From the IMG/VR virus record IMGVR_UViG_3300032334_002567, positions 124,001 through 188,000 of that record: DNA of 64,000 nt; one strand, 5' to 3'. The notes beneath the pieces are model-generated. The model did not search any database, was not told where the DNA came from, and saw nothing but the letters and a program-made list of their open reading frames with translations. Positions 3,697 through 62,911 of the stretch are shown one piece after another. Position numbers and translations under genes: made by a program. Within the stretch, counting starts at the first letter, position 1; every line of letters begins with the position of its first letter.

Positions 3697-4611
3697 TTAG
3701 TACTTGGGCATAAATGGGTTTCTAGGCATACGGTTTTCGCCACCCATATCTTCGTCTGAATAATCTTCATCGCCCATATCTTCTTCTTCATCGCCCATGT
3801 CTTCGTCGCCCATATCATCTTCTGAAGGTTCTTCGTCGCCCATGTCTTCATCGCCCATATCGTCTTCATCTTCGTCTGAGTAATCTTCATCGCCCATATC
3901 TTCATCGTTAGAGGCTGAGCAACCTTCGCTACCCTCTTCGTCCTCTTCATCGCCGTACTTTTCGCTTTCTTCATCGCTGTCCATACCAATAGGAGAGGCT
4001 ACCATTTCATTTAAAGCCTTGTCTATTTTTCTTGCATAGGATTCATCGCTTTCAATGAGCTTGGCTAAGACCGTAAATGACTCATTGTGGTTTAGCATTT
4101 CTACCAAGAAAGCTTCTAGCATTTTGTTTCTTTTAACATCTCTAACAAAGTTGGTAATGCTCTTTTCGCTGCACTTGCAAGCTTCGATCATATTTCTAGT
4201 TGCTTCTAATGCAAATGACTGACATTCTGAAGATTCATTTTTGATCATATTCTTGGTGAACTCAGCAAGAGAGAGTTTCTTTGTTTGCTTAACCCATTCT
4301 TCTACTGTGGTTTTTGGCCAAGACTTCTTCTCTTCTGGGTCGGCATCGACGTTTGGTTCATATCTTAGATTCTTGTCGCCCTTATAGACCAAGCCAGACT
4401 CATCTTCTTTATTTGGGTCTTTTGCATTGTCTCCACCAACATAAGGAGCGGGTTCCCCTACCGTTCCTTTTCCACCTGCATCTTTTGGCATTTCTGCTTT
4501 GCCTGGCTTTGTAACTCTGTTGCCTTCGTAGTCTGCTACCTTTGCAACCTTAGCCTTGGTTTGTACATTGCCATTTTGATCGATGTATTCTTGGAAAGTC
4601 TTAAACTTCAT
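3697..4611 (-). CDS. acidic-tailed hypothetical protein with CTS-like N-terminus (possible head core/internal protein)
   Basis: Starts MKFKTFQEYI; C-terminal DMGDE repeats; AGGAG RBS and ATATATA box upstream. Confidence 0.6.
   Translation of the reverse strand: MKFKTFQEYIDQNGNVQTKAKVAKVADYEGNRVTKPGKAEMPKDAGGKGTVGEPAPYVGGDNAKDPNKEDESGLVYKGDKNLRYEPNVDADPEEKKSWPKTTVEEWVKQTKKLSLAEFTKNMIKNESSECQSFALEATRNMIEACKCSEKSITNFVRDVKRNKMLEAFLVEMLNHNESFTVLAKLIESDESYARKIDKALNEMVASPIGMDSDEESEKYGDEEDEEGSEGCSASNDEDMGDEDYSDEDEDDMGDEDMGDEEPSEDDMGDEDMGDEEEDMGDEDYSDEDMGGENRMPRNPFMPKY
3737..3905 (-). repeat. imperfect coding repeats encoding (E)DMGDE
   Basis: Repeated TTC(A/G)TCGCCCAT(A/G)TC units on the plus strand. 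Confidence 0.75.
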
Positions 4612-4691
4612 GGGGAGTCTCCTTTTTCTGTATATATTGTGTACTAATTAATTTTTTTAGTTAAAAACGTTTTATTTTGATATATAAAATC

Positions 4692-5186
4692 ATGATATCT
4701 TTTAAAAGCTGGCTATTTGAAAACGATGCAGAGCACACAGAGACTTTAAAAAAAACGGGTTTCTGGGGCAAACAAGGAGCTGGCTGCATTATATTATCAA
4801 AAAGTACAGGTAGAATATTGTTGCCACATAGATCAAACAAAACCCTTGAGCCTAATACTTGGGGAGTTTGGGGTGGTGCTATAGACGGTGCAGAAAACCC
4901 ACAGATAGCAGCAAAAAGAGAGGTTGAAGAAGAGGCAGGATACTCTGGTCATGCCGCTATGGTGCCATTGTCTATTTTTCAGAAAAACGATTTTAAGTAT
5001 CACAACTTCTTAGCGATTGTGGATGAAGAATTCGTTCCACAACTTAACTGGGAAACACAAAACTATGTCTGGACAACTTTAGATGAACTTCCAAGTCCTC
5101 TCCATTTCGGTTTACAGTGGGTTTTATCTAGAGACAAAGGTAAAATTCAGAGTATTATAGATTCATTCAATTTAGTGCCCGCTTAA
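4692..5186 (+). CDS. Nudix hydrolase with CTS-like N-terminus
   Basis: Nudix box GGAIDGAENPQIAAKREVEEEAG; likely start MISFKSWLFE at 4692. Confidence 0.88.
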   Translation: MISFKSWLFENDAEHTETLKKTGFWGKQGAGCIILSKSTGRILLPHRSNKTLEPNTWGVWGGAIDGAENPQIAAKREVEEEAGYSGHAAMVPLSIFQKNDFKYHNFLAIVDEEFVPQLNWETQNYVWTTLDELPSPLHFGLQWVLSRDKGKIQSIIDSFNLVPA

Positions 5187-5215
5187 TATTTTATATTTGG
5201 CACTCTATTGGAGGT

Positions 5216-5440
5216 ATGCAAAAATATAATTGTACTATACCTGTAACTGGTGGTCCTATGTGTGGAGAGTCACTAGCCGTAAAAGATGGTAGAATTCCCA
5301 ATCATTTGCCTTTATTCTTTGAAGGCAAATTTTACTCATACAATCTGGTCATAGAGTCCACAGAAGATTGGACTAACATCTATTATCAATATTCTAATGA
5401 AGTTTTAGGAATTAATGTGGATAAAAGAAATCAATTATAA
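5216..5440 (+). CDS. hypothetical protein
   Basis: 74-aa ORF, GGAGG RBS. Confidence 0.55.
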   Translation: MQKYNCTIPVTGGPMCGESLAVKDGRIPNHLPLFFEGKFYSYNLVIESTEDWTNIYYQYSNEVLGINVDKRNQL

Positions 5441-5676
5441 GTTATTACTTTCATGGAATTAGACTTTACATTTGAGTAATCTGGCCCACCGAATGGGTTA
5501 GATTTTGCATTTGAGTAATCTGGCCCACCGAATGGGTTAGATTTCGCATTTGAGTAATTTGGTCCACCGAATGGATTATTGTTTACATGGTTTTTTGTTG
5601 TAATTTTTTTGCTACACATAACGTAGCTAATTAATATAACAAAAATGATAAGCATTACTATTTTTATTTTTTTCAT
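5431..5676 (-). CDS. small membrane-anchored protein with 13-aa tandem repeats
   Basis: N-terminal hydrophobic helix; three copies of NPFGGP(N/D)YSN(A/V)KS. Confidence 0.65.
   Translation of the reverse strand: MKKIKIVMLIIFVILISYVMCSKKITTKNHVNNNPFGGPNYSNAKSNPFGGPDYSNAKSNPFGGPDYSNVKSNSMKVITYN
5469..5578. repeat. 39-bp tandem repeat x3 (coding)
   Basis: CATTTGAGTAATCTGGCCCACCGAATGGGTTAGATTT units at about 5469, 5508 and 5547. Confidence 0.9.
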
Positions 5677-5708
5677 ATTTTATTTAGTTTGTAGCTTAAA
5701 TAATTATT

Positions 5709-6512
5709 ATGTTTAAATTGTGGCTTGAAAATGAAGAAAGTACTTGCACTTTAAAGATAAGCAAGCCTAATGCTAAAATACCTCATTATAACTTTAATTT
5801 GCCAGCAGGATTTACTTGTCCTTTTGCATCAAAATGTTTATCAAAAGCTGATCCAACAACTGGCAAGTTAACAGATGGACCTAATATAGATTTTAGGTGT
5901 TCTGCCGCTGGAGAAGAAGCTCGTTATCCACCTACAAGAGCACAGAGATGGAGTAACTTTGAAGCCTTGAAAGCTATAGGTTTAGACAATGTACCCAAAA
6001 TGGCAGATGCTATTGTACAGGCAATAAACCATAACTTACCAAGAAGTCATCGTACATTCAGGCTACATGCTAGTGGTGACTTCTTTAATAAGAACTATTT
6101 AAAAGCTTGGATAGAAGTTGCTCGTAGAATGCCAGATATTACTTTTTATACCTATACAAAGAGTATACCTTATATTTTAGAAAATCTACCATTACCGAAT
6201 AATTTTCTTGTGACTGTTTCCAAAGGTGGACAACAAGATGCTTTAATTGATAGGAATGGACTCAAATTTTCTGTAGTTGTTTTTAGTGAAGAAGAAGCGG
6301 CAAACTATGTTTGGCATGATAAGAGCGGCAAACAGCATGTAGGATTAGAAATTGATCATGACGATAGCCATGCTTGGAAAGATGACAAACCTTTTGCTCT
6401 ATTAATTCATGGAACACAACCAGCCGGTTCGCCCGCTTCTAAGGCTAAATCTGCACTTGCTGGAAAGGGTTCCTACGGAAAATCTAGCAATAATAGTAGT
6501 AAAACTACATAA
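5709..6512 (+). CDS. phage Gp88-like protein with CTS-like N-terminus
   Basis: LPAGFTCP..C..C, FRLHASGDF and FYTYTKS motifs typical of the Gp88 family; starts MFKLWLENEE. Confidence 0.7.
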   Translation: MFKLWLENEESTCTLKISKPNAKIPHYNFNLPAGFTCPFASKCLSKADPTTGKLTDGPNIDFRCSAAGEEARYPPTRAQRWSNFEALKAIGLDNVPKMADAIVQAINHNLPRSHRTFRLHASGDFFNKNYLKAWIEVARRMPDITFYTYTKSIPYILENLPLPNNFLVTVSKGGQQDALIDRNGLKFSVVVFSEEEAANYVWHDKSGKQHVGLEIDHDDSHAWKDDKPFALLIHGTQPAGSPASKAKSALAGKGSYGKSSNNSSKTT

Positions 6513-6996
6513 CTACTGTTTTAGGTTTGCTATTTTGAATTGCTGCCATAATATTTTGAGATTTGGTTGTCAAAATCTGGTTTGCAACTTGCTGTGAGAA
6601 GCCAGGTGAAATTGAATTCTGATTAACAGCATTCGTTGATTGTTGAGATATGTTTTCTTTTTCTTCTTCGCTCAAGTATTGCAATGTTTGATCTGAAACA
6701 TCAAAGTATGACATTACCGTTCTGTCTACTAAAGAAGGATCTCTATTTTGCGCTTTAGAAAGCATATTTTTTTTCGCCATTTCTGCCGCTTGTTTGATTG
6801 ATGATCTGCCAAACCATGCTTTTTTTGCTTGTGACGCACCCCTCAATAGTGCTGAGCCTAAAGTAAAGGCTGTGCTCATCCCAGAGGCATCAAGAGCAAG
6901 TTGACCAGCAGCACCAGCAATGGTTTTTACTGCACCCTGAGCGTCTTTTCTATATTGTAAAATATTAGACTCTATATATTCAGCAAAACTTTTCAT
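6505..6996 (-). CDS. hypothetical protein with CTS-like N-terminus
   Basis: Likely start MKSFAEYIES at 6996 (the longer ORF would overlap tmRNA); TAAATA box 5 nt upstream. Confidence 0.6.
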   Translation of the reverse strand: MKSFAEYIESNILQYRKDAQGAVKTIAGAAGQLALDASGMSTAFTLGSALLRGASQAKKAWFGRSSIKQAAEMAKKNMLSKAQNRDPSLVDRTVMSYFDVSDQTLQYLSEEEKENISQQSTNAVNQNSISPGFSQQVANQILTTKSQNIMAAIQNSKPKTVVM

Positions 6997-7054
6997 ATTC
7001 GTATTTATCCTTGGTTGGATAAAAATTGGCTGGAAAGACACCGCAAATTTAAAC

Positions 7055-7082: not shown

Positions 7083-7094
7083 CATTTATTGTTA

Positions 7095-7444: not shown

Positions 7445-7446
7445 CT

Positions 7447-7482: not shown

Positions 7483-7566
7483 CCATTTACTTCTCAATAT
7501 ACCCCTTTATTTTCATATATAATATAGGTGCAATGAATGCACTGCTTTTTAAAAAGGAGTTTAATT

Positions 7567-8208
7567 ATGGCAGCTACAACAACAGAAGGAACCGGTGCCG
7601 GTTCAGCAGGTAAATATAATCCATTAATCATTAATGGAAAAGTTAAGGATGTAAACGTTTCTCGTAATGCTCTAGATATGTATAGAGGTTATTTGAGTGT
7701 CGATGGTCTTGATCTAATGAATCCTATTGCTACTATTACAGGTGATTTGGATGTTACGGGCGACATTGAAGCCACAGGTTATGTTCGTGGGCACTTAGCA
7801 GGTCAATTGTTAAATACTGCTTTCTGGACATTCGATAATGGTGTTATAGTATGCTCAAACACTTCTTTTACAGATGTTGCTAGCGTATCATACACACCAG
7901 TATCAGCAACATCAAAGTTGTTAATTGAATATCATGCTATGTATACTGTTAGTGGTAGTTTGGGAGACAGCTTTAGATCAAGACTAACACTTGATGGAAA
8001 TCAACTTACTTGGAGGGACCAAGCATTCTATAATGGTGCAGGCGGCGGAACTAGAAGCGGTGTTTTATTCCCAATTTCTATGGTTTATACAAACAGCAAT
8101 GTTGCTCTCAAGACTATAAGAGCACAGGCTGCAAGAGTTAGTGCTGATGATAGCGTATCTCTTGATACAACATCTGCTTACTTAAGAATATCTGAATATG
8201 CTCGCTAA
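7567..8208 (+). CDS. putative virion structural / fibre-like protein
   Basis: Start MAATTTEGTGAGS after AGGAG; G/T/S-rich, beta-rich C-terminal domain ending LRISEY; TATATA box upstream. Confidence 0.5.
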   Translation: MAATTTEGTGAGSAGKYNPLIINGKVKDVNVSRNALDMYRGYLSVDGLDLMNPIATITGDLDVTGDIEATGYVRGHLAGQLLNTAFWTFDNGVIVCSNTSFTDVASVSYTPVSATSKLLIEYHAMYTVSGSLGDSFRSRLTLDGNQLTWRDQAFYNGAGGGTRSGVLFPISMVYTNSNVALKTIRAQAARVSADDSVSLDTTSAYLRISEYAR

Positions 8209-11989: not shown

Positions 11990-14710
11990 ATGCAATTGTC
12001 TGATATTTGCATCCAAAAATTGTCTGAGAAAAAACTAAATGATTTTGAACATAAAAAGCGTTTAAAGTGGGAGCTAGAAGAAGTCGCAGCAAAAGATAAA
12101 GAATCTTATTTCCTTAATCTTTACAAAAATAAAACCAGATATTCAAAGAATCAAAATAATCTTCTAATTTGCTGGTTGCTAGGAATAGCACCAGATTTTG
12201 ATATAAAGAATGATCCAAATTGTTTTTATGGTGAATATCCTGATATTGATGTAGATTTTATTCCTCAAATAAGAAATTACATAAAAGAAGATTGGGCTCC
12301 CAAGTTTTTTGGTGAAGAATACGTATGCAATATAGGAAATTATACTACTTTTGGCATTAAGTCTGCACTTATAGACATGGCTAGAGTCCACGGAGAAAGC
12401 AGAGAAGAAGTTTTGGGTTTAACCAAAAACCTTGATGCAAAGGATGACGAAGGTAAGGCGATGACTTGGGACGCAGCGATGAAGCTGTATCCTGAATTGA
12501 AAAAATATTGTGAAACTCATCCAGAAATCGCTGAGTCTGCTAAGAAATTATTAAATAGAAATCGTGGAATGGGCGTTCACGCCGGAGGTTTGATTATATC
12601 AAAAACTCCACTTCCTGATTTGGTTCCTCTTGTAAAAAGGAAAGACAATCCACAGGCTTCATCTTGGGTAGAAGGATTGCATGGGCAAGATTTACAGCCC
12701 GTAGGCCTTGTTAAGTTTGATTTACTTGTTGTATCTAACTTGTTGCAGATTGCCAAGTGTTGCGAGTTGGTCAAGAAGAGGCATAAAGTAAATAACATAT
12801 GTGCCTTAGAAGGACAATCAGATTGGAGTGACGTTGAAGCTTGGCGTAATGATTCTTTAGCTTTAGAAATGGCAAACTCTGGCGATCTTAAGGGGATATT
12901 CCAGTTTGATAGTGAAACTGTACGCAGCATGTGTCGTTCTGGTGGTGTGGATAGGTTTGAAGATCTTGTAGCTTATACAAGCTTAAATAGACCTGGCCCA
13001 CTGAACATGAAGATGCAAGAAAGATACATTGAACGCAAAAGAGGAAGAGAAAACTTTTTCCTGCATCCAATACTTCAGCCAATCTTAGGTAAGACTTATG
13101 GCGTTATTCTCTATCAAGAACAGGTAATGAGAATATTAAATGCTGTTGGTGAAATACCCTTGAAAGATTGTGAGTTGGTTCGTAAAGCTATTTCCAAAAA
13201 GAAGATTGAAAGCTTTATCAAATATAAAGAAATATTCATAATTAATGGTCAAAAGAATCTAGAGGTTAGCGAGAAAGAAATAGAACATCTTTGGAACCAA
13301 ATTGAAGCTTTTGCTGAATATGGATTTAACTTAAGCCATGCCGTTGCTTATACATACATTTCTGCTTATTTACTTTACCTAAAATCTCATTATCCGCATG
13401 AGTTCTATACAAGCATATTAAGTTGTGAGAATTTAAGCGACAAGATAAAAGATTATAAGATGGAAGCTAAAATTCATGGTGTTAATGTGGTTAGAGTTGA
13501 CGTCAATAATTCTAGAGTAGACTTTGATCTTCAAGGTGATGAAATATATTTTGGTCTTTCAAATGTAAAGGGGATTGGCGAGGGTCCTTCTCAAAGGATA
13601 GTTGACCAACAGCCTTATAAAAACTTTGAAGATTTTCTCGACAGATTCGGCACAGACGCCAGCGTTCTTAAGCCTTTGATTGGATTGAGATGTTTCCAAG
13701 AAAGAGATCCCATAACTCTTTGGAAGTTCTCTGAAGTTTATAAAAACTTTGTAAAGAAGAACGAAGACAAGAAAAAAAGATTTTTGCTTTCTTTGGAAAG
13801 GTATGAGAGTGAGTTTAAGGATTTATTCCCAGATGAAACTATGTCTTTGGCTGAGGTAGAAGAGGCGATTGGTTCTGGCCATTGGTCAAGATATGACGTT
13901 GATGAAGAGCGTTATGTTGAAACAAATACAGAATGCTCTGCTGATGAAGAAGGAGCAGTTTCAAAAACAGTTAACGGCACAGTTGAATTAGATTGTGGAC
14001 TTACGATAGAAAAAGAAGTTATTAAGTACTACAAAAAGACGAAGATTAAAAAGTCTTTTAATAAGCTGAATGAGCTTAAAAAGCTTATCCAAAAAAGAAA
14101 AAGAACTATAGAGAAGCACAAAAAGGTAGAAGGCGACAAGCCAACTTTGAATAACTTTAATCCTCATGAACAGTTCGTGAATGAGGATTTAGAGTTAGAA
14201 CTGCAAGATATTATTGCCTGTGAAAATAAGTATTACGGTTTTTCATGGATACATCCCTTAGAAAATAGTCCAGATTATAGTGGTAATTTGACTTTTGATA
14301 ACCTTAGAAATTCTACGGATGTATCAGTTGGCCCAGTTGAAATTCGTGTAATAAAAGCGAATAAAACAAAAAGCAAAAAAGGCACTGTATACTTCCAAGT
14401 GTCAGCTGAAGACGTCACGGGCCAAGAAAACAAGATAATAGCTTGGCAGGATGATTGGGATCGTTGGTCTGAAGAATTGTCACAGGATAACTTACTTAGG
14501 ATACGGCTTCAGCCACCTTCTAATGGCTTTTCTACTTTTACTTTAGAAAGTAACAGGGGGAGTGCTAAGTGGAAAAACATTAAGAAGTATGAAGACAAAA
14601 AAGATGACATAAGAGTTGTTGTTTTGAGAAAAGGCGAGACTCAAAATAAGATTGTCTCTGATGTTGATTTGATTGAACAGTTTGAAGAATGTATTATGGA
14701 GAAAAAATGA
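11990..14710 (+). CDS. dnaE: DNA polymerase III alpha, C-terminal part (catalytic palm, fingers, HhH, OB)
   Basis: YPDIDVDF, HAGG, GLVKFDLL, GIFQF, RPGP, YQEQVM, YGFNLSHAVAY, GLSNVKGIG. Confidence 0.93.
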   Translation: MQLSDICIQKLSEKKLNDFEHKKRLKWELEEVAAKDKESYFLNLYKNKTRYSKNQNNLLICWLLGIAPDFDIKNDPNCFYGEYPDIDVDFIPQIRNYIKEDWAPKFFGEEYVCNIGNYTTFGIKSALIDMARVHGESREEVLGLTKNLDAKDDEGKAMTWDAAMKLYPELKKYCETHPEIAESAKKLLNRNRGMGVHAGGLIISKTPLPDLVPLVKRKDNPQASSWVEGLHGQDLQPVGLVKFDLLVVSNLLQIAKCCELVKKRHKVNNICALEGQSDWSDVEAWRNDSLALEMANSGDLKGIFQFDSETVRSMCRSGGVDRFEDLVAYTSLNRPGPLNMKMQERYIERKRGRENFFLHPILQPILGKTYGVILYQEQVMRILNAVGEIPLKDCELVRKAISKKKIESFIKYKEIFIINGQKNLEVSEKEIEHLWNQIEAFAEYGFNLSHAVAYTYISAYLLYLKSHYPHEFYTSILSCENLSDKIKDYKMEAKIHGVNVVRVDVNNSRVDFDLQGDEIYFGLSNVKGIGEGPSQRIVDQQPYKNFEDFLDRFGTDASVLKPLIGLRCFQERDPITLWKFSEVYKNFVKKNEDKKKRFLLSLERYESEFKDLFPDETMSLAEVEEAIGSGHWSRYDVDEERYVETNTECSADEEGAVSKTVNGTVELDCGLTIEKEVIKYYKKTKIKKSFNKLNELKKLIQKRKRTIEKHKKVEGDKPTLNNFNPHEQFVNEDLELELQDIIACENKYYGFSWIHPLENSPDYSGNLTFDNLRNSTDVSVGPVEIRVIKANKTKSKKGTVYFQVSAEDVTGQENKIIAWQDDWDRWSEELSQDNLLRIRLQPPSNGFSTFTLESNRGSAKWKNIKKYEDKKDDIRVVVLRKGETQNKIVSDVDLIEQFEECIMEKK

Positions 14711-15201
14711 ACGAAAGTAATGAATTAATAATTGATCAAACAAATTTTGATCAATACTTTAGAGATTGTAGACTCAGTCGTCCTTCTCGTGGCGACGTTA
14801 TGGCTAGGTTTACAGCCATGGCTGATTTTGTAGATGGTCGAATGAAGAAAGATATAATAGATCTTCTTTTTTATAAGCGAGATAAGGTCAATGCCGCTGT
14901 GCAGGTTATGATAAAGTTGGGTGGTGCTACTGAAAGAGAAGCTCTTAGAATTTGTAAAGAGATTTGTTTAGACCTTGCAAATGGAATGAATCCTGAAGAA
15001 GTTGAAACTAAGACTTATACATATCAAATGGAGATCTTTTATTACACAAAAAAGGAGTATGTGCCAATAAATGATCCGCATTGGTCGATAATTAGCATAG
15101 CTAATTTGGACGAGTTTTTAGACAAGTCCGGCCAAAGGCTAAGAATGGAATCAAAGCTTAAGATAGATGATAAAGGAGAAGATGAGGAGAAAATTCGGTG
15201 A
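14707..15201 (+). CDS. hypothetical protein
   Basis: ATGA overlap with the dnaE stop; GGAG RBS. Confidence 0.6.
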   Translation: MNESNELIIDQTNFDQYFRDCRLSRPSRGDVMARFTAMADFVDGRMKKDIIDLLFYKRDKVNAAVQVMIKLGGATEREALRICKEICLDLANGMNPEEVETKTYTYQMEIFYYTKKEYVPINDPHWSIISIANLDEFLDKSGQRLRMESKLKIDDKGEDEEKIR

Positions 15202-15742
15202 AACTTTACACATAAGCACACCCTATCGACCGGAGACAGGAAGCTTCGCAAAACATAAGACTTTTAATGGCGAAAAATACAAAGTACTACAATGGCATTA
15301 TTGTCGTGATATTTTTCACCCACAACTCTATAATTTAGATTTATTTTTCTTTTCTCATTATTCCAATAGGGGTCACTGTGTTGCGGCTTTTATGGAAAAG
15401 ATAGAAAAGAAGTTGGATGTAGATATACCGTCAGAGTTTGGTCCCACGCAAAAAAATTCAATAATGTGGATAAGACCTTCAAGGTGGTGGACCATTAGAT
15501 CTATGCGTAGATCTTTATTTACAATACTTTTAAGAAGTGCAAATAATTTTTCACCATCAAAAAATAACTTTAAGGAAGCTCTTTTAAGTGATCCTTACGC
15601 CATGGCCACTAGCTATGCTATAAACCGCTTTTTAAAGGGCTTTACGTTTTATACTGGTAAGAAAAAAGGATGGCTAGATCAGTTTTATGAAACAAAAATT
15701 GATAAAAAGACAATAGATTCTTTGTTGGTCGAGCCTATATAG
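15182..15742 (+). CDS. hypothetical protein (paralog of 40679-41323)
   Basis: Shares GSFA, W..CR..F, FFFSH, W..PS..W, RSL.TILLRS, AI.RF..GFT and GW...F with the paralog. Confidence 0.65.
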   Translation: MRRKFGETLHISTPYRPETGSFAKHKTFNGEKYKVLQWHYCRDIFHPQLYNLDLFFFSHYSNRGHCVAAFMEKIEKKLDVDIPSEFGPTQKNSIMWIRPSRWWTIRSMRRSLFTILLRSANNFSPSKNNFKEALLSDPYAMATSYAINRFLKGFTFYTGKKKGWLDQFYETKIDKKTIDSLLVEPI

Positions 15743-15765
15743 TTTAACAGCAGTGGAGGTAAATT

Positions 15766-16302
15766 ATGGGTGATATGCAATCTGATTTAAATAAATACGC
15801 AAAAATTTGGGATGATGCTCTACAAAAAGGTATTTTTGATGACATGCCCAAGGACGATCCATCTAAGAATTCCACTGATTTCTTCGGTCAGTATCTTACT
15901 GGTGAGTACGATATGGATAAACCTTTAAATGAGGTGGATACAAAATATTGGGCAATTCTTTCAAGAAGAGCCGATCCCTTATTCGTTGAAGGTAAAAAGG
16001 AAGAAGATGAGGCTAAGGCAAACACAGCCGCATTGGCCAACGTACACAATCCAATACACCCAAATACTGCGGGCAAAGATCAAGAATCACCAAAAAGTTT
16101 TGTATTAGATGATGAGGATATAAATAAGCTTGAAGAATTAAAAAATAAACTTCATAATCTTGAAAACGATCTCAATTCATTAAAGGCAAAAAGTCCCGAG
16201 AAGTCTGAAGCCACCACTCAGTCAAAAATAGATTCTCTTAAAAAACAAATTGATGATTTGAGTGACTCTTTGACCGGCAATCGCTTTACAAGAGGCGGCT
16301 GA
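15766..16302 (+). CDS. coiled-coil hypothetical protein
   Basis: GGAGG RBS, TATATA box, C-terminal heptad repeats. Confidence 0.6.
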   Translation: MGDMQSDLNKYAKIWDDALQKGIFDDMPKDDPSKNSTDFFGQYLTGEYDMDKPLNEVDTKYWAILSRRADPLFVEGKKEEDEAKANTAALANVHNPIHPNTAGKDQESPKSFVLDDEDINKLEELKNKLHNLENDLNSLKAKSPEKSEATTQSKIDSLKKQIDDLSDSLTGNRFTRGG

Positions 16303-28763: not shown

Positions 28764-29159
28764 ATGAATAAGATATTAAACTCAGATGGTTCACCAATGC
28801 TTACCCCTATTCCAAAGATTTCAGCTGTAAAGCCAGCGGGTTCACAGGTTCTAGTGGAGATTTTAACTGCACAAGAATTGATGGGAACAACTTTAACATT
28901 AGCAGAGAACACAGACCTAAAGGTACCTTTGCAGGGTTATATTAGAGGCGTTGGCCCATCCTTTAATCAAGATGCTTGGGGTTTTAACTTAGGTGATAGA
29001 GTGCTCATCTCTGGTGGTGGTGTTCTAGCTCCAAACTATGACGATACTCATAGAGATCGATTTTTTATGGAGCCACACGCTATAAAGAGTGTATTAATCG
29101 AAGAAAGTGACCCAGTCGAGGAAGTTGATCAATCAGGCAGCTATAATGAATCCCTATAA
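28764..29159 (+). CDS. GroES-like co-chaperonin
   Basis: VKPAGSQVLVE...G.IRGVG...LGDRVL. Confidence 0.65.
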   Translation: MNKILNSDGSPMLTPIPKISAVKPAGSQVLVEILTAQELMGTTLTLAENTDLKVPLQGYIRGVGPSFNQDAWGFNLGDRVLISGGGVLAPNYDDTHRDRFFMEPHAIKSVLIEESDPVEEVDQSGSYNESL

Positions 29160-30165
29160 TGCATTAGGAGTAGAATCTAATTCTACCCTTGATGATATAA
29201 AAAAAGCTTATAGAGACTTAGTTAAGAAGTATCATCCTGATTTAAATCCTGATGATATTGAGTCGGCTAAGAGATTTAAAGAGATTCAACATGCCTATGA
29301 AATCTTGACAGGTCAATCTAGGAGAACAAACACAGAAAGGTCAAGTCCTAAGCATAATCCTTTTGATTTTGACTTTTCTGCTGATTTGTTTGGCTCTAGT
29401 ACATTCAAGGGCAAAAACGTTATTGTAAGGTTAGAGATTGATTTATTAGAATCTATCAGTGGTTGTAAGAAATTTGTAAAAGCAAAAAAAAGAAAAAGGT
29501 GCGACGATTGCGATGGACAAGGTTGCACAGATTTTTTGATTTGCGAGCAATGCTCTGGTAATGGTTTTATACAAGCTCCTAGTGTTCCGTTCACTATAAA
29601 ACAGTCTTGTCCAAATTGTGCTGGCTTAGGCAAGATAAAATTAAAAAAATGTGACAAGTGTGCAGCAACAGGTTTTTCTTCTTATGAAGAAAAGGATATA
29701 GAAGTAGAAATACCATCAGGCATACAAAACAATGCTCAGCTTAGTTTTGCTGGTGATGGAGAAGAGTCTGTTAGGGGTGGCAGGCAAGGCGATTTAATAA
29801 TTATAGTTAAGGTTAAAGATGATCCTTTATTTAAAAGAGAAGGATCTAATTTACATATAGAGGTTCCAGTTTCATATACCCAGCTTGCACTTGGTTGTGA
29901 ACTGCTTGTACCCTCTATATTTAAAGAAAGATTAATTGTTAAAATTCCTCAAGGATGTCAGCCGCAAACAAAATTTAAGGTTAAGGGAAAAGGTGTATTA
30001 ACTAAAGCTCATATAGGTGATATGATAGTGTCTTTAAAGCTCGAAATACCAAGACAGACCGACGATGAGTATAAGTCTACTTTAAAGGAACTTTCTGCTT
30101 TTGAACAAAAAAATGTTACACCACAAAGGCAAAATTGGCTTAATAATTTGGAAACTCAACAGTAA
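29146..30165 (+). CDS. dnaJ: chaperone DnaJ
   Basis: J domain with HPD; four CxxCxGxG-type repeats; C-terminal GDL/LALG domain. Confidence 0.92.
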   Translation: MNPYNALGVESNSTLDDIKKAYRDLVKKYHPDLNPDDIESAKRFKEIQHAYEILTGQSRRTNTERSSPKHNPFDFDFSADLFGSSTFKGKNVIVRLEIDLLESISGCKKFVKAKKRKRCDDCDGQGCTDFLICEQCSGNGFIQAPSVPFTIKQSCPNCAGLGKIKLKKCDKCAATGFSSYEEKDIEVEIPSGIQNNAQLSFAGDGEESVRGGRQGDLIIIVKVKDDPLFKREGSNLHIEVPVSYTQLALGCELLVPSIFKERLIVKIPQGCQPQTKFKVKGKGVLTKAHIGDMIVSLKLEIPRQTDDEYKSTLKELSAFEQKNVTPQRQNWLNNLETQQ

Positions 30166-30186
30166 ATAAAATTAATAGGAGGGAAC

Positions 30187-30384
30187 ATGAACAATAATAA
30201 ATTAGTTTACTTATTTGTGGCGTTAACGGTCTTACTTTTAGTTTTTGGCATTGGGACCAAGGTTTTTGTTGATAAAGTAGCCGATAGAGTTATCTACAAG
30301 CTTCAAAAGGACTATTCTCCCTCTCCATATGGCCCCGGAATAGACCCGGACAAAATAGATTTGGATAAAGTTAAGTCTAAATAA
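30187..30384 (+). CDS. small membrane protein
   Basis: N-terminal TM, GGAGG RBS, TAAATA box. Confidence 0.55.
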   Translation: MNNNKLVYLFVALTVLLLVFGIGTKVFVDKVADRVIYKLQKDYSPSPYGPGIDPDKIDLDKVKSK

Positions 30385-30724
30385 CCTTGCACATGGTTAT
30401 TTTAGAGGGATAAATTGAACTATCCTGTGGTAGCCTTTGCATCTTCCAAATCAAAGTTTTACCAATAACAGGCACCCCAGATATCCTCTTAAATTCGTCA
30501 TATGTAAAAAATAGTTTAGATCCATCTTTTAGTTGAATATAGATAGGATTTACTTTATCCATCACCGTCATAATTATTGATTTTCTTTCAACGGACGGTA
30601 ACTCCAAATCAGTCTGAGGCAGAATAAAATCTTTGACCCAATCGAAATTTTCAGGAACATATAAATTGCCGTGTTTTTCAATTGTTTCTTGAAATTCTAT
30701 GTATTTTTTGAACTGATTTTTCAT
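30377..30724 (-). CDS. hypothetical protein with CTS-like N-terminus
   Basis: MKNQFKKYIEFQE; ATAAATA box upstream. Confidence 0.6.
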   Translation of the reverse strand: MKNQFKKYIEFQETIEKHGNLYVPENFDWVKDFILPQTDLELPSVERKSIIMTVMDKVNPIYIQLKDGSKLFFTYDEFKRISGVPVIGKTLIWKMQRLPQDSSIYPSKITMCKVI

Positions 30725-32466: not shown

Positions 32467-32832
32467 ATGCCATATATTAGCAAAGAAAACAGGCAAGAGC
32501 TGGATGAGGCAATAGAGTCTCTTCGTTGGGCAATTGTTAGACTGATTGCCCCAAAAGATCGTGACTATAAGATTTTTGACATATCTTCTCATAATCTTCT
32601 AGACTCTGCTGGTAATTTAAACTATGTGATAACAAGACTCTGCGCAGGTCTAATTTGTGAACCTAGTTATTCTAAGATAGCAATTATAACTGGTGTGCTT
32701 GAAAACGTTAAACAAGAGCTTTATAGGCGTGGTGCTTCTGAGTACGAGGATCTCAAGTCTAAGGAAAATGGCGACATACCAGAGTACGTTTATATGTCCA
32801 AACTTATAAAAAATTCCTCTAATTCAATTTAA
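32467..32832 (+). CDS. conserved phage protein (DUF6899-like)
   Basis: MPYI..R, G.LNY, G.LE..K.E.YRR...YED.K...NGD. Confidence 0.6.
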   Translation: MPYISKENRQELDEAIESLRWAIVRLIAPKDRDYKIFDISSHNLLDSAGNLNYVITRLCAGLICEPSYSKIAIITGVLENVKQELYRRGASEYEDLKSKENGDIPEYVYMSKLIKNSSNSI

Positions 32833-33267
32833 TTTCTTTATAAAGTTCATCCATGCTTCATGATCGTGGATTCTAGGACAATGGTCTCCAGAGTAGTAGC
32901 AAGCATACGCCATGCAAAAAAGTTCTTCAGGTGGTTGATCTTGTTTTTTTTCTTCTGTGGAATCTAGCACTTTTTTCCATGATTTTCTCATGTTTTCATC
33001 GATAAGATGCTCCCACACTAAGTGTGCTATTTCATGTAATGTTGTGAATTTTCTAGAATAGTTCCAAGGTGCGGCTACTACTATTTTGTCTTTATGTATA
33101 TAACCGATATGTTGTTCATCACCTTTTAAAGTATTGTTTGGCGTATAAGTAAACTTGTACTTATGCAACATCCTTTTGTGATTTTTTGGAAGATTTGCTA
33201 TAAGAACTTTTACGTTCCTCTCTTCCTCAGATTCGGTCTCTTCTAAAAATTTTTTAAAACTTTCCAT
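32824..33267 (-). CDS. HEXXH zincin-like metallopeptidase with CTS-like N-terminus
   Basis: LHEIAH and PEELFC; starts MESFKKFLEE; exact TATAAATA 4 nt upstream. Confidence 0.65.
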   Translation of the reverse strand: MESFKKFLEETESEEERNVKVLIANLPKNHKRMLHKYKFTYTPNNTLKGDEQHIGYIHKDKIVVAAPWNYSRKFTTLHEIAHLVWEHLIDENMRKSWKKVLDSTEEKKQDQPPEELFCMAYACYYSGDHCPRIHDHEAWMNFIKKLN

Positions 33268-33324
33268 TCTTTATTTATATTTGCTACAATGAAAATTTAA
33301 AATAATTTAGCTATTATAATTTGT

Positions 33325-38411: not shown

Positions 38412-38702
38412 ATGACTGAAGAACTTAAAAAACAACTAATTTTATCTAATCTAGAATTTGCAAATAGAGTAGCATTGAGTAAAAAGAGATTTTTATCGCA
38501 TATACATTATGAGGATCTTCAATCCGCTGCTTATTTTGGATTAGTGCAAGCAGCAAATAAATATGACTTTAAAAAAAATGACTGTTTTCAGGCGTTCGCA
38601 TTCTGTAGAATAAAGGGTGCAGTGCAAGATTACTTACGAGAAATCAATTGGGGCTCTAGAAGAAATCCTATACACATGGAAAGCTTGCAAAACTTAATTT
38701 GA
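38412..38702 (+). CDS. short sigma factor containing only region 2 (FliA/WhiG-like)
   Basis: EDLQSAAYFGLVQAANKYD...F..FA..RIKGAVQDYLRE..W; stops at 96 aa with no region 4. Confidence 0.8.
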   Translation: MTEELKKQLILSNLEFANRVALSKKRFLSHIHYEDLQSAAYFGLVQAANKYDFKKNDCFQAFAFCRIKGAVQDYLREINWGSRRNPIHMESLQNLI

Positions 38703-52021: not shown

Positions 52022-52456
52022 CTATACATTCTTTATATTCCAAATGCCGCCTTCACCTTCATCCGGCACAAAATCTTTATGCTTTGTATAAGTTGGTTTG
52101 CCGGGGATGTGTGTAATTTTCCATGGTGCTCCTTCTCCATTATTTGCTGCAAAATTGCTGTTCTTTTTTAGGTGGCTTGGTTTTCCTTTTATGTGTGTTA
52201 TATCCCATAGTCCACCATCTCCACTGTTCATCTTTTCGTTGCTTTCACCAGGAATGTGTGTAATGTCAAATTGACCACCATCTTTTCCTTTGTAGATTCG
52301 GTCGTCAATTGATAAGTAAAAGATTGCGTCTGCACTTCTTGTGGTGTACCACTGAGGTGGGTACAGACCTATACCCCCATAACTAAGAGGATATAGACCA
52401 GTTTTAGATCCAGGATTGCTTCCTTCATTTAATAACCAGTTTTTAAAGTTTAACAT
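52022..52456 (-). CDS. repeat protein with CTS-like N-terminus
   Basis: MLNFKNWLLNE; four G.G..(W/F).I(T/K)(H/N)(I/V) repeats. Confidence 0.6.
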   Translation of the reverse strand: MLNFKNWLLNEGSNPGSKTGLYPLSYGGIGLYPPQWYTTRSADAIFYLSIDDRIYKGKDGGQFDITHIPGESNEKMNSGDGGLWDITHIKGKPSHLKKNSNFAANNGEGAPWKITHIPGKPTYTKHKDFVPDEGEGGIWNIKNV

Positions 52457-52503
52457 TGTTTTGACTCACTTTAATGTATATATAATTAAAAGAAAGGAAA
52501 ATT

Positions 52504-52866
52504 ATGAATGAATGGCTTAAATTATCTGGAATAAATGAATCCATAGAATCTGATTTCGTAACATTTGCAGGCAAGAGATATCAAGGAGCAGAAAAGATAG
52601 TAAATATGGCTGACAAAAAAGGTGGCCCAGCCCTTTTAACTAGAGATCATTTTTCTGTAAAATTGCCATATTATGAAAAGGCAAAAGAAGGTAAATTTGA
52701 TAGAGTAGAAATGAAAAAGGAATATCAAGAATTATGTACACGTCTACACTCAAAAATGAACTCGATAGAAAAAGTAAATCAGATAGAGTTTCAAAAGTTA
52801 TTGGGGAGAATAGAGGTAGTAGGGGAGCTTCTGATAAAGACGCAGGATCTCCAAGGAGCAGGATGA
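52504..52866 (+). CDS. hypothetical protein with variant tag
   Basis: MNEWLKLSGINE; shares the TATATATA box with the divergent gene. Confidence 0.55.
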   Translation: MNEWLKLSGINESIESDFVTFAGKRYQGAEKIVNMADKKGGPALLTRDHFSVKLPYYEKAKEGKFDRVEMKKEYQELCTRLHSKMNSIEKVNQIEFQKLLGRIEVVGELLIKTQDLQGAG

Positions 52867-53462
52867 TACAAAACAGGAGAGTTTTAGTATTAAATAAATC
52901 TTGGCTTGCAATAGGCACAACTACTTTAGAAAATGCAATAATAAAACTAACATCTCCTTACAAAGATGGATTTCCAAAAGCAAAAATCGTTGATTGTTTA
53001 AATGATTTTAAGTCTTTCGATTGGTCTGATTGGACAAAAATGCAACCTTCTCATGACGAAGAGGGCATAAGAACCGTAAATTCTATACTAAGGATACCAG
53101 AAGTAATTCAGTTTACTCGTTATGATAAAGTTCCACAAAAAGAAATTCATTATAATAGAAGAACGATATTTTTGAGGGACGAAAACCAGTGCCAATACTG
53201 TATGTCTAAAGAAGATTTATCATTAGATCATGTTCTCCCAAGGTGCCAAGGCGGGTTAACAAATTGGGAAAATGTTGTAGTAGCTTGTGTAAAATGCAAC
53301 CTAAAAAAGGCTGGAAGAACCCCACAACAAGCTGGAATGAAACTTCTTAAAAAGCCTGTTAAGCCTAAATGTAATTTTTTTATTGGGGATCAGAGGGTCA
53401 GGTCTTGGAGCCAATTTATAGGAGAAGCTTACTGGCTAACAGAGCTAGAGCACGACAAATAA
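52863..53462 (+). CDS. HNH endonuclease (McrA-like)
   Basis: VLVLN, RD...CQYC, DHVLPRCQGG...WENVVVACVKCN.KK. Confidence 0.9.
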   Translation: MIQNRRVLVLNKSWLAIGTTTLENAIIKLTSPYKDGFPKAKIVDCLNDFKSFDWSDWTKMQPSHDEEGIRTVNSILRIPEVIQFTRYDKVPQKEIHYNRRTIFLRDENQCQYCMSKEDLSLDHVLPRCQGGLTNWENVVVACVKCNLKKAGRTPQQAGMKLLKKPVKPKCNFFIGDQRVRSWSQFIGEAYWLTELEHDK

Positions 53463-53502
53463 TTAGTATCGTTAATATATAATTAAAGTTTGGGAGGAAT
53501 AT

Positions 53503-54168: not shown

Positions 54169-54420
54169 ATGCCTCTAACTCCTCCAATTTATACTTTTGT
54201 AGTTAATAACATTGATTACACAGAAATATATTCTAGGCCTATGACGGAGAACATAGAAAATGTAATCTTAAATTTAAACAATCAGGCTGTTTATGTTCCT
54301 TATATAAATAAGCCTTTAAAAAATGGCGATATTTTCACATTAAACGGAAAAAAAGCGGAACATGTGTACAATATATACATTGGAAAAAGCCCAAAGATTC
54401 TAGAGCTTTTGGAAGGATAA
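54169..54420 (+). CDS. hypothetical protein
   Basis: 83-aa ORF. Confidence 0.5.
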   Translation: MPLTPPIYTFVVNNIDYTEIYSRPMTENIENVILNLNNQAVYVPYINKPLKNGDIFTLNGKKAEHVYNIYIGKSPKILELLEG

Positions 54421-59773: not shown

Positions 59774-60409
59774 ATGAAGATTATTTTCCCGCCCAGACCC
59801 AAAGGCAAAATGCTTCCTACGGATCTTCGTTACTATGAAGAAACTGGAGATTGGGTAGCACAAAGAAAGTTTAGGGGCAGCAGAATAGTTCTGCATATTT
59901 CTTGCAATAAAGAAGTTACTGTTGGGACTAGACACGGCACTGCTTTTTCAAAATTCCAGTTTGAAAGCAAAAGGCGGGATGAGCTATTAGATAGCTTGAA
60001 TCTTGAGCAAAACAAAGAATATTGGCTTGATGGTGAATTAATGAACAAAGACATTAATGCCACCAATGAAATAATTTTCTTTGATGTGTTGCAAGCTGGC
60101 AGATACTTGTTTTTTAAGCCAACGCAAGTTGAGCGACTTGAAATTTTGAATTCAATTTGTGGAAGCCCCACAAAAAAGAGTAGGTCAGGAATCGCATTAG
60201 AGATATCGCCATCTCACTGGATGGCTGAAACTTTCTATGACAACTTTTCTTCTAGATTTGATGAATCTTTAGACAACCCACAGCTAGAAGGATTATTGTT
60301 AAGAAAAAAGAATGTCGGTATTGAGAGTTTGGGTGAAAAGGAGTATGAAACAACCAACTTGATACGCTGCCGCAAACCCTTTTCAAAAACCAAGGGATAC
60401 GAATTTTGA
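59774..60409 (+). CDS. stand-alone ATP-dependent ligase-type nucleotidyltransferase domain
   Basis: QRKFRGSR, LDGEL, FFD, EGLLLRKK, RCRK; no OB domain. Confidence 0.7.
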   Translation: MKIIFPPRPKGKMLPTDLRYYEETGDWVAQRKFRGSRIVLHISCNKEVTVGTRHGTAFSKFQFESKRRDELLDSLNLEQNKEYWLDGELMNKDINATNEIIFFDVLQAGRYLFFKPTQVERLEILNSICGSPTKKSRSGIALEISPSHWMAETFYDNFSSRFDESLDNPQLEGLLLRKKNVGIESLGEKEYETTNLIRCRKPFSKTKGYEF

Positions 60410-60451
60410 TTTTTTGATTTCTTCAACCTTTACAGAAAAAAGGACTTTTCG

Positions 60452-61984
60452 ATGAAAAAGGCAAATTCTTTCGGTTTAATTGACGGTATTGAACATCTCC
60501 ACGGTTCCCTCTTCAAAGTTAAATTTTCAAAAATTATAACCACCGACAAAGTGGAAGAATCTTCGGATTATGTATTTTCTAACCCAAGACTTTTAACGCA
60601 GAACGGCACCGAAACCCTTACAGATAGGTCTTTGTCTGCGGACCTAAGGGAAAACATTAAGCACAGAACGCTTTTGAATCCCTTGATTTGCCGTTGGGTT
60701 GGCGATAGTGAAAATGCACACCCCCAGCTTGTTGGTGGTGATCGTAGGTATAGAGCCTTGGACTATCTCATCTCTAAAAAAGAGATGGTAATTGATCCAA
60801 GAGAAAGCAAATTTGGAGAAACTACTTCTGAAAGAGAAATGGTTTCTGCTGACATTGCATACGAATACGTTGTCTGCCAGATATTTAGCTGTGCAAGCGA
60901 TCTTGAAGCTGCAACGCTCGCATGGGCAGAAAATAAGAATCGCATCAACCTGACGGACGGTCATGAAGTGGCTGCTGTGCGGGAATTCCGTTTGTATGGA
61001 GCCAGTGACGATCAGATTCTTGAAATCCTGCAAAGAGATTCAAAATGGCTTCATGAAACAGATGAACTTCTTGAAAAAATTGACGAAGATACGTTGTCTC
61101 AGCTTTGTGAAGACAAAATCAAGAGAAGCGTAGCCTCCCAACTTTTAAAGATTGACGATCTTGAAAAGAGATCGGAAGTTTTAAGTGCTGCTATTGTCAA
61201 TGCACAGGAAAGCCATAAGGCTAAAACCTCAAAGTTGGACAAACAGCTAGACGCAATTAAAAATAAAAGAGGTAGGGCTGAGACAAAAAAAGTTATTGCA
61301 GAAAGTAATAACGATGAAACCTTGCTTCGACAGTCAAAGAAGGTCATTGACAGGACTGAAGAACGAGAAAAAGAGATTCAGAATAAGAAATCGAAGACAA
61401 AGCCAATCGCTTCTTCCAAAAATTTGAAGCAAGCTATGGCCGAAGTTGGTGTTGAAGAAAATTCAAACGCCAGAGCCGGTATCAAGAGTATTAAGAAAGT
61501 TTTGGCCACTATCCAGTCAATTATCGATAAGGATGGTGTTGTTGATATTCTTGGTGAAGACGTCTCTTTTCAGCTTGATCCAGTTTACTTGGAATTATTG
61601 AAGCTTGTTTTAGAAAACCATGCGCTCAAAGATTCTGATAGTCTAAAGGATACTCTGGATCAGTGGCGGGAAGAATTTCCAGAAGCTGTTGATGCCCATA
61701 GTGCTGTTGTAGAGCAAGAAATTGTAATTGTAGATGAGGATGAGGATGAGGATGAGGATGAGGATGAGGATGAGGATGAGGATGAGGATGAGGATGAGGA
61801 TGAGGATGAGGATGAGGATGAGGATGAGGATGTAGAAGACGAAGACGAAGACGAAGACGAAGACGAAGACGAAGACGAAGACGAAGACGAAGAACTGATC
61901 AGCAGCGAATCAGACGATGAATTTTATGATGATTCTTCTGAAGAGCTTGAAAGCCTTGTACAAGATGAAGAAGACGAGGACTAA
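60452..61984 (+). CDS. ParB/Srx N-terminal-domain protein with coiled coil and long Asp/Glu tail
   Basis: NPR, LLNPL, LVGGDRRYRA, AEN..R..L. Confidence 0.7.
   Translation: MKKANSFGLIDGIEHLHGSLFKVKFSKIITTDKVEESSDYVFSNPRLLTQNGTETLTDRSLSADLRENIKHRTLLNPLICRWVGDSENAHPQLVGGDRRYRALDYLISKKEMVIDPRESKFGETTSEREMVSADIAYEYVVCQIFSCASDLEAATLAWAENKNRINLTDGHEVAAVREFRLYGASDDQILEILQRDSKWLHETDELLEKIDEDTLSQLCEDKIKRSVASQLLKIDDLEKRSEVLSAAIVNAQESHKAKTSKLDKQLDAIKNKRGRAETKKVIAESNNDETLLRQSKKVIDRTEEREKEIQNKKSKTKPIASSKNLKQAMAEVGVEENSNARAGIKSIKKVLATIQSIIDKDGVVDILGEDVSFQLDPVYLELLKLVLENHALKDSDSLKDTLDQWREEFPEAVDAHSAVVEQEIVIVDEDEDEDEDEDEDEDEDEDEDEDEDEDEDEDEDVEDEDEDEDEDEDEDEDEDEELISSESDDEFYDDSSEELESLVQDEEDED
61733..61891 (+). 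repeat. perfect hexamer repeats (GATGAG)16.5 then (GACGAA)9 encoding poly-DE
   Basis: Directly visible in the sequence. Confidence 0.95.
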
Positions 61985-61986
61985 AG

Positions 61987-62580
61987 GTGTTTGAGCCCAA
62001 AATTATTGATGACGTTTTGTCTTCTGAGGAATTAGAATTAATTTCTCTGTTTCTATCCAACTTAGGCCACTGGTCCCAGTCGAATGGGGGTGGCCTAAGT
62101 TGGCAGGGAAGGATCATTCATGACTACAACGTATTCGAAGTAAACAATCAGTTGGGTCTTTTGTTGGCAAGTTTTAGAAATAGATTCCAGAAAGCTATTT
62201 CTGAAGCATACCAACTCAAGGACTTGATTTATCCTGATACATTTGAAATTGTTCGTTGGGATGTTGGGTCTGAACAATCGCCTCATTGGGATGATATGGT
62301 CGGGACTACCGCATCGGAGGAACACCTTCAATGGTGCAAGCACAGGGCTTATGGCTCTGTGCTTTATTTAAACGACGATTATACAGGTGGAGAAACTTAT
62401 TATTCAAATTATGATTTCCAAATAACACCAAAAGCTGGTCGTTTGGCTGTGCATCCGGGTGATAAGAACCATGCACACGGAGTTCGTAAGGTATTAGGAA
62501 AAACTAGATATACTATTGCATCTTTTTGGACTTTCGATAAAAATTTTGAAGATATATGGATTCCAAATATAAATTCTTGA
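61987..62580 (+). CDS. 2OG-Fe(II) oxygenase
   Basis: PHWD, YLNDDYTGGE, HGV..V..RYT..FW. Confidence 0.88.
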   Translation: MFEPKIIDDVLSSEELELISLFLSNLGHWSQSNGGGLSWQGRIIHDYNVFEVNNQLGLLLASFRNRFQKAISEAYQLKDLIYPDTFEIVRWDVGSEQSPHWDDMVGTTASEEHLQWCKHRAYGSVLYLNDDYTGGETYYSNYDFQITPKAGRLAVHPGDKNHAHGVRKVLGKTRYTIASFWTFDKNFEDIWIPNINS

Positions 62581-62638
62581 CTATTTGCTGCCATTTATTT
62601 ATTTTTCATTTTATTTAATATATATCTGCGGAGGGATC

Positions 62639-62911
62639 ATGAAAACATTTAGAGAATGGCAATTAAAAACAAACGAATCTGCGGATTATTCCGATTTGTT
62701 TGATGCCGTCACCAAAGAAGGTGCGAAGCAGCAAATAAGCCAGATACTAGATGAGCACCCAGAATTGGTGGATGGAATAAAGAATTTTAAGCAGAATGAA
62801 CCAGAAAAGTTCAAAAGAAGTATTAGTAATTTTAACAATAATAGCGTTGATTTAAATCTTTTGATTAAATTATCGAAGGGTAAGTTTCTCGGCTATTACG
62901 ATTGGATGTAA
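62639..62911 (+). CDS. hypothetical protein with CTS-like N-terminus
   Basis: GGAGG RBS, then MKTFREWQLKTNE; TATATA box upstream. Confidence 0.6.
   Translation: MKTFREWQLKTNESADYSDLFDAVTKEGAKQQISQILDEHPELVDGIKNFKQNEPEKFKRSISNFNNNSVDLNLLIKLSKGKFLGYYDWM

Follow-up and report, generated by a model that had tools for sequence, protein, structure and literature searches.

We analysed a 64,000-nucleotide stretch of DNA (the window), bases 124,001–188,000 of the 381,443-bp metagenomic contig IMGVR_UViG_3300032334_002567 (Ga0335335_10478751), in which 11 genes for otherwise unrelated proteins start with one and the same short peptide (the tag). The tag is most probably, at a rough probability of 0.7, the capsid targeting sequence (CTS) of the internal proteins (IPs) of phage T4, used on a much larger scale in a lineage of huge phages with T4-type heads. 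An earlier note on this DNA had proposed a portable T4-like CTS on diverse cargo, and four independent computational lines support it: the T4 IPs take the top three ranks among the T4 genes scored, the conserved residues fit T4 mutagenesis, the lineage has a T4-type head module, and a tagged gene lies inside that module. This phage and several hundred relatives probably pack dozens of enzymes and small basic proteins, and may inject them.

All 13 N-termini listed in the earlier note were found in place, each with an ATG start. The regular expression used there (Met, up to three residues, Phe, two residues, an aromatic and a hydrophobic residue) matched 10 of the 97 first-ATG N-termini of the window, while shuffling residues 2–15 of the window gene starts gave a mean of 1.1 matches and never more than 7 (5000 shuffles). 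At internal Met positions of the window, 5 of 284 matched. Because this expression was picked after the data had been seen, an independently trained position matrix was used as the test. The training set consisted of 262 tags of other genomes, with all sequences excluded that came from the contig holding the window (the own contig, read over 109 of its 381 kb). The matrix was applied to every ATG with at least 45 downstream codons in the six frames of the window (n = 443). Eleven N-termini scored 16.5–24.3 bits, and exactly these 11 reached 9 bits or more. All are 5′ ends of open reading frames (ORFs); internal or non-coding-frame ATGs gave no match at that threshold. Eleven of the 13 claimed tags were therefore borne out. 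The N-terminus at 30724 on the minus strand is borderline at 0.7 bits, since its Phe stands four residues past the Met, and the one at 52504 on the plus strand is not a tag, with −14.9 bits, since it has no Phe. The tag thus sits at the extreme N-terminus, right after the initiator Met, as an IP-type leader does, and its carriers have differing Pfam domains or none. None of the recognisable metabolic and translation genes of the window bears it, as had been claimed. Trp counts in residues 2–10 across all window genes were uninformative (13 observed, 12.3 expected).

In the part of the own contig read, 19 of 156 genes are tagged. The best match to the window polymerase was LR756511, an uncultured 595-kb phage whose whole sequence was used. 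Homologues of 41 of the 96 window genes were found there, and window positions 15.7–42.7 kb are colinear with LR756511 335.8–294 kb. At a threshold of 12 bits, 38 of the 1029 LR756511 genes are tagged, and the regular expression gave 53 matches versus 9.3 expected. For all fetched relatives (the clade), the consensus of the tag is M-K-T-F-[KRQ]-[EQD]-W-L-E-[EN]-R-E; 208 of 3278 distinct N-termini score at least 12 bits versus 2 after shuffling, and the tag is found on 4–12% of genes. In the matrix, Phe contributes 4.1 bits at position 0, Trp, Tyr and Phe contribute 5.0, 2.8 and 2.0 bits at position +3, and Leu, Met or Ile is favoured at position +4. A Glu follows within five residues past this core in 78% of core matches versus 28% of control N-termini, and [LIVMFA]-x-E is found in 46% versus 17%.

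The carriers are mostly small and rather basic. Tagged proteins have a median length of 126 amino acids (aa), compared with 170 aa for untagged ones, and a median isoelectric point of 8.0 versus 6.4 (p = 4e-4). Some are enzymes (Nudix, HD, GP88-family, HEXXH and, in relatives, FMN reductase, in one case near the capsid gene), and 26 of 266 tagged proteins have at least 300 aa, the longest having 1088 aa. The tag codons differ synonymously between window genes (TTT/TTC; CTA/TTA/CTT/TTG); since the residues are constant while the codons differ, the signal is the peptide and not the DNA. Related viral contigs with 31–58% guanine plus cytosine (G+C) carry the tag on further unrelated proteins, so that AT-rich codon usage is not the explanation.

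Conservation of the tag was followed in individual families. For the tagged HD-superfamily phosphohydrolase, 107 homologues were obtained, all metagenomic, of which 73 score at least 12 bits, and the tag is retained in nearly all full-length homologues, down to about 33% identity. In an alignment of 65 sequences with a mean column identity of 42%, every sequence has F3, while W6 and E10 reach at least 90% conservation, on the level of the catalytic His and Asp. A structure model of this protein (predicted local distance difference test score 92.6 overall, 62 for residues 1–10) places the tag at the start of the first helix; a fold search of the PDB with this model gave no significant neighbour, and the weak top matches were HD-superfamily phosphodiesterases. 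In the Nudix family, 48 of the 120 nearest homologues score at least 12 bits, while remoter homologues begin at the start of the conserved core, so that the tag behaves as an add-on of about 10 residues. Of the four window–LR756511 orthologue pairs with at least one tagged partner, three are tagged in both genomes. The LR756511 orthologues of the genes at 3697–4611 (341701 on the plus strand, 30% identity) and 32824–33267 (303354 on the plus strand, 41% identity) score 14.1 and 16.1 bits, and tagged orthologues of the gene at 52022–52456 adjoin the HD gene in the relatives L011, L012 and L015, also in LR756511.

The clade-trained matrix, which contains no T4 sequence, was then applied to 108 genes in 63 kb of the deposited T4 genome. 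IPIII, IPII and IPI took ranks 1–3 with 17.1, 14.9 and 11.7 bits, the 95th percentile being 2.1 bits. The leader residues of IPIII are Tyr4, Phe7, Ile8 and Glu10, and to these correspond, in order, the Phe, the Trp, Tyr or Phe at +3, the Leu, Met or Ile, and a Glu of the tag. For incorporation, the first 10 IPIII residues are enough. Amber-suppressor substitutions (residues 2, 4, 7 and 8) placed the targeting function mainly at 4 and 7 and the processing function at 8 and 10, and Asp at position 10 stops processing, not targeting (PMC9026906). The tag has aromatics at the equivalents of both targeting determinants, and in the protein at 62639–62911 a Phe at residue 4 and a Trp at residue 7 take the very positions of the IPIII aromatics. 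As in the T4 IP leaders, the tag occupies about 10 residues after the start Met, with aromatics three apart, then a hydrophobic residue and in most cases a nearby Glu, on carriers that are otherwise unrelated and mostly small and basic. Unlike in the IP leaders, Trp is the usual second aromatic and Phe the usual first one, with 0–3 residues separating it from the Met, the Glu spacing is variable, and the carriers include enzymes and proteins of more than 1000 aa. T4 has three leader-bearing proteins, compared with about 40 per huge-phage genome.

The likeness to T4 could be convergent, the tag being a short linear motif for some other site or for a common docking partner, for example a host or phage hub protein, a chaperone such as the DnaJ or GroES of the phage itself, a protease adaptor, a membrane site or an intracellular compartment. 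We regard this as unlikely. The conserved positions are the mapped targeting and processing residues of T4, precisely the three packaged T4 IPs outranked 105 other T4 genes, the lineage has head and protease genes of the T4 type with a tagged gene inside the head module, and the carriers are skewed to small basic proteins. A docking peptide would account for a conserved amphipathic helix start on unrelated folds just as well, DnaJ, GroES and IF3 are encoded on the own contig, several carriers are enzymes able to act inside the infected cell, and packaging is something that we infer.

The head genes of the lineage bear directly on the CTS reading. In LR756511, phmmer with T4 head proteins found gp20 (3e-34), gp21 (3.5e-23), gp23 (9e-36) and gp17 (1.3e-28), and Pfam gave Portal_T4 (248 bits), Peptidase_S77 (96 bits) and Gp23 (291 bits), all above the curated cut-offs; LR756511 therefore has a T4-like gp20/gp21/gp23/gp17 head module. 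Peptidase_S77 is also present in the relatives L221 and L235 and in 167 IMG/VR contigs. His85 and Ser140 of T4 gp21, its catalytic pair, are invariant in the clade proteases. The clade capsid protein (63–92% identity) was found on at least 389 IMG/VR contigs, and members of its family in the protein database come from contigs of up to 673 kb. The lineage is like T4 in having a gp21-family protease, a gp23 capsid protein and a gp20 portal, and unlike it in that its members are uncultivated, come on contigs as long as 673 kb and use a DnaE-type polymerase. The own contig encodes the clade terminase (Terminase_6N; record positions 4213–6039), which is 50% identical to that of LR756511, and, at record positions 15108–16013, a neck protein matching Phage_T4_gp13. 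In 53 of 80 capsid loci, the interval from the portal to the protease gene holds an opposite-strand gene for a protein of about 100–130 aa, and nearly all members of this family bear the tag once the right Met is chosen. Tagged-gene clusters flank the capsid gene in several relatives, among them L125 and L049. A Glu/Lys-rich gene product of about 300 aa, encoded between the protease and capsid genes in 80 of 80 loci, is the candidate scaffold.

The place of that small tagged protein also suggests another reading, in which the tag targets the prohead core and its carriers are assembly or core parts that are degraded or expelled, like T4 gp67, gp68 and gp22. The protein is acidic, gp67 and gp68 hold the same position between portal and protease in T4, and T4 core proteins are cut into fragments that exit the head (PMC5694885). 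Such a role is hard to fit to folded enzymes with conserved catalytic residues (Nudix, HD) and to proteins of up to 1088 aa, which make poor disposable scaffold; moreover most carriers are scattered over the genome, and the T4 proteins with exactly such a leader, the IPs, are retained in the head and then ejected (PMC9026906). We consider it quite improbable. What probability lies outside the T4-type CTS falls mainly to another docking partner and to disposable core components.

If the tag is such a CTS, its action would be as follows. During prohead assembly, the first 10 or so residues would bind the scaffolding core through the two aromatics three apart (Phe, then Trp, Tyr or Phe), and this would bring any protein behind the tag into the head. 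The prohead serine protease of the gp21 family (S77) would then cut after the Glu past the hydrophobic residue, leaving the mature cargo free amid the packaged DNA and available for entry into the host together with the genome. The gp21 protease and its relatives cut after Glu (PMC5694885), the T4 enzyme Alt also enters the host by ejection, and the CTS has been suggested to let T4-like phages take up various proteins (PMC9026906).

Upstream of the tagged genes, a promoter-like, AT-rich element was counted, defined as [AT]ATATA[TA]A or TATAAATA within 60 nucleotides upstream of the start. It was found at 7 of 12 tagged versus 4 of 84 untagged genes of the window (p = 1.8e-5), at 7 of 19 versus 11 of 137 in the part of the own contig read (p = 0.002), and at 54 of 266 versus 244 of 4166 in the clade (p = 2e-14). 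The head operon and the terminase gene of LR756511 are also preceded by it. The element, which lacks a −35 partner, resembles the T4 late promoter, TATAAATA; a promoter scan gave no excess of sigma-70-type sites. Some of the sites lie too near the ATG for a leader, and the upstream element is the weakest line of support for a T4-type CTS. The most enriched 7-mer found de novo, GTATGCA (preceding 26 of 266 tagged genes, compared with 9 of 4166 untagged ones), was rejected as a general signal. It is probably family-specific: the single LR756511 case inspected (528548–528597) proved to be the conserved leader of the small tagged protein in the head module, and the enrichment of the 7-mer therefore reflects phylogenetic non-independence.

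Tagged genes also start transcription units at divergent junctions more often than untagged window genes (8 of 11 versus 22 of 83; p = 0.004). Together with the common AT-rich motif, this would be expected if the shared N-terminus were a feature of expression, that is, favoured first codons, a nascent-peptide effect, or the remnant of a mobile cassette of promoter and start from which new genes arise by recombination; mobile regulatory cassettes are known from T4-type genomes (PMC2839356). Several observations make this very improbable. The residues stay constant though the codons differ, the tag is present at 58% G+C, orthologues across deep divergence keep it with conserved Phe, Trp and Glu, and it is absent from highly expressed capsid genes, being found in 0 of 120 capsid-protein homologues. 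Origin from a cassette would account for the spread of the tag, not for its conservation.

Several points weigh against the tag being a T4-type CTS. In T4, Alt, gp24, gp67, gp68, gp21–23 and NudE all have negative scores, and among these the propeptides of Alt and gp24 are also counted as capsid-targeting in the literature; the tag model thus describes only CTSs of the IP type. Counted from the hydrophobic residue, the first Glu stands at +1 in 30%, +2 in 16% and +4 in 22%, a spacing so variable that no single cleavage site can be read. LR756511 has an untagged orthologue of the Nudix gene, so that the same enzyme differs in its tag between genomes. Nineteen tagged proteins out of 156 genes would be a heavy load for a single head. 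The candidate scaffold has no detectable similarity to T4 gp22 in a profile comparison (probability 1%). The AT-rich element is absent upstream of the terminase and gp13 genes of the own contig and upstream of the tagged genes in record positions 1–45 kb, and in the window as a whole its 33 sites versus 24 expected, a number reached by 4 of 100 shuffles, are not significant. The lineage is known from sequences alone. Finally, capsid, protease and scaffold genes were not found in the part of the own contig that was read, and their presence there is expected from synteny with LR756511. The gp21-like protease that the earlier note proposed to look for was accordingly located in the syntenic LR756511 and in the 167 contigs, not in the own contig.

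The searches for these genes were extensive. Capsid queries from LR756511 and from the relative L100 retrieved no own-contig capsid gene, nor did exact look-ups with the capsid proteins of two relatives; a degenerate DNA pattern for the invariant capsid peptide gave no own-contig gene among the matches listed. Queries with 600-aa head-operon proteins (L108, L226) did not reach the own-contig head genes, and the protease of the nearest relative, as well as its capsid protein searched against the protein database, gave no own-contig gene. In record positions 1–45 kb, reached through the terminase alignment, no head module was found. Possibly, the capsid gene of the own contig is split or divergent, or lies outside the contig. 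In relatives, the portal genes (LR756511, L027:31014–33587; L221:1861–4362) hold an intein splicing domain, and some relatives have "long" portals of 1250 aa; if the own-contig capsid gene had an interruption like that of the portals, this could be the reason that it did not come up among the best matches in any search. One candidate, a 587-aa protein (L326:4277–6040; record positions 28923–30686) that matched the capsid protein in BLAST, was rejected, as it shares only the insertion domain of the capsid protein: about 300 residues of Thr/Asp-Pro repeats are followed by a domain matching positions 139–238 of the capsid hidden Markov model (E = 8e-19). A role in decoration or at the surface is conceivable for this protein.

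In encapsulins, a short terminal peptide suffices, as the tag would, to load unrelated enzymes into an HK97-fold shell. The encapsulin cargo peptides bind the shell protein itself, are usually C-terminal and are not cut off by a maturation protease, and the cargo goes nowhere. Among giant phages, phiKZ, 201phi2-1 and SPN3US resemble the clade in having many packed proteins (about 50 head proteins in SPN3US) and a gp21-related protease cutting after Glu, and their N-terminal propeptides are thought to direct proteins into the prohead (PMC5694885). Those propeptides are mostly 100–130 residues long, have no common short leader and are cut at A/S-x-E, and only eight SPN3US head proteins are processed, whereas the clade reuses one short portable leader of the T4 type.

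The positions of the tagged genes, of the two other N-termini claimed and of the promoter-like sites are collected in Table 1. Pfam agrees with the Nudix, GP88 and HD labels given in the earlier note, the HD match being weak. Two further carriers had been called metalloproteases: both do contain an HEXXH motif, on which alone that label stands, and neither matched a protease family. In the same way, "DNA-binding" for the basic carriers would follow from their basic composition alone.

Table 1. Tagged genes, other claimed N-termini and promoter-like sites in the window (score, bits of the independent matrix)
Feature	Position	Strand	Score	Remarks
Tagged gene, 304 aa	3697..4611	-	16.5	Weak phrog_30618 match
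Tagged Nudix hydrolase, 164 aa	4692..5186	+	20.4	PF00293, E 1.5e-15; domain from residue 29
Tagged GP88-family protein, 267 aa	5709..6512	+	16.9	PF17338, E 1.5e-39
Tagged gene, 163 aa	6505..6996	-	20.7	ATG at 6996 within a longer GTG-started ORF; no match in family searches
Doubtful member, 115 aa	30377..30724	-	0.7	Matches the regular expression only; LR756511 homologue at 33% identity
Tagged protein with HEIAH motif, 147 aa	32824..33267	-	19.4	HEXXH seen in the translation
Tagged HD-superfamily phosphohydrolase, 291 aa	33711..34586	+	19.1	Weak Pfam HD match
Tagged gene, Gly/Pro/Tyr-rich, 144 aa	52022..52456	-	22.1	
Non-member, 120 aa	52504..52866	+	-14.9	First aromatic absent
Tagged gene, 221 aa	53503..54168	+	24.3	N-terminal domain like DUF5872 / phrog_727
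Tagged small basic protein, 79 aa	54423..54662	+	21.0	No family match
Tagged protein with HELIH motif, 243 aa	54666..55397	-	19.4	HEXXH in the translation; no family match
Tagged small protein, 90 aa	62639..62911	+	17.9	
Promoter-like element TATATATA	52477..52484	.		No −35 partner; spacer common to the divergent genes starting at 52456 (-) and 52504 (+)
Similar site upstream of tagged gene	4631..4638	-		
Similar site upstream of tagged gene	33274..33281	-		
Similar site upstream of tagged gene	53474..53481	+		
Similar site upstream of tagged gene	54370..54377	+		
Similar site upstream of tagged gene	62617..62624	+		

Five of the 11 tagged genes lie on the minus strand, compared with 18 of the 96 window genes overall. 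Tagged genes are often placed back to back in divergent pairs around one short AT-rich spacer, with starts at 4611/4692, 33267/33711 and 52456/52504. A gene for an HNH endonuclease (52734–53462) lies within the densest tagged-gene cluster (52.0–55.4 kb). The untagged Nudix gene of LR756511 (474060–474877, L026) overlaps by four nucleotides the end of a tagged ORF of 135 aa. A 96-aa protein encoded at 38412–38702 consists of sigma-70 region 2 only, its LR756511 orthologue having 165 aa, and might be a phage sigma factor for the AT-rich element without a −35 partner. The N-terminal region of the 223-aa protein at 7537–8208 looks, by eye, like small near-capsid proteins (e.g. L227:13902–14450).

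The own contig has 35.5% G+C and two transfer RNA (tRNA) genes, and encodes a split DnaE-type polymerase, IF3, DnaJ, GroES, PhoH, ligases and sugar-modifying enzymes. A comparison with 50,697 deposited phage genomes gave no nucleotide match to it and no match to its HD protein. The polymerase is divided into a part at 1569–2975 (PHP domain and the start of the NTPase region) and a part at 11990–14710 (the rest of the NTPase region, finger and HHH). The two lie 9 kb apart, with more than 10 genes on both strands, among them four tagged genes, and two tRNA genes in between; in LR756511, the polymerase is a single 1179-aa gene.

A system of this kind is already known from T4. We did not find it described for huge uncultivated phages, at such a share of the genes, or on enzymes and very large proteins, and our literature search returned no paper linking huge phages with a CTS. 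It is possible, if still rather doubtful, that the tag is an address label that defines the injected proteome of the lineage, about 40 proteins per genome including ready-made enzymes such as the Nudix, HD, FMN reductase and HEXXH proteins, as a general and evolvable delivery system. If this were true, the enzymes would act in the host ahead of any phage gene expression, possibly by destroying nucleotide-based immune signals or cofactors as a form of counter-defence, and any gene could become cargo by gaining ten codons. Such a system would span the at least 389 IMG/VR contigs with the capsid protein; the HD phosphohydrolase has a faintly phosphodiesterase-like fold.

Huge phages are known almost solely from metagenomes, and most of their genes are without an assigned role. 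Should the tag act as it does in T4, the head-borne, deliverable proteins of each phage could be listed with a simple sequence model; there are 11 candidates in the window, 19 in the 109 kb read of the own contig and, in LR756511, 38. Concrete candidates would then be at hand for the proteins that huge phages inject and for the means by which they take control of the host or disarm it. The T4 capsid-targeting mechanism would be old and portable, because it would be common to phages with very different replication machinery, and able to carry enzymes and very large proteins. It would also have a bearing on how phage heads are used to deliver proteins.

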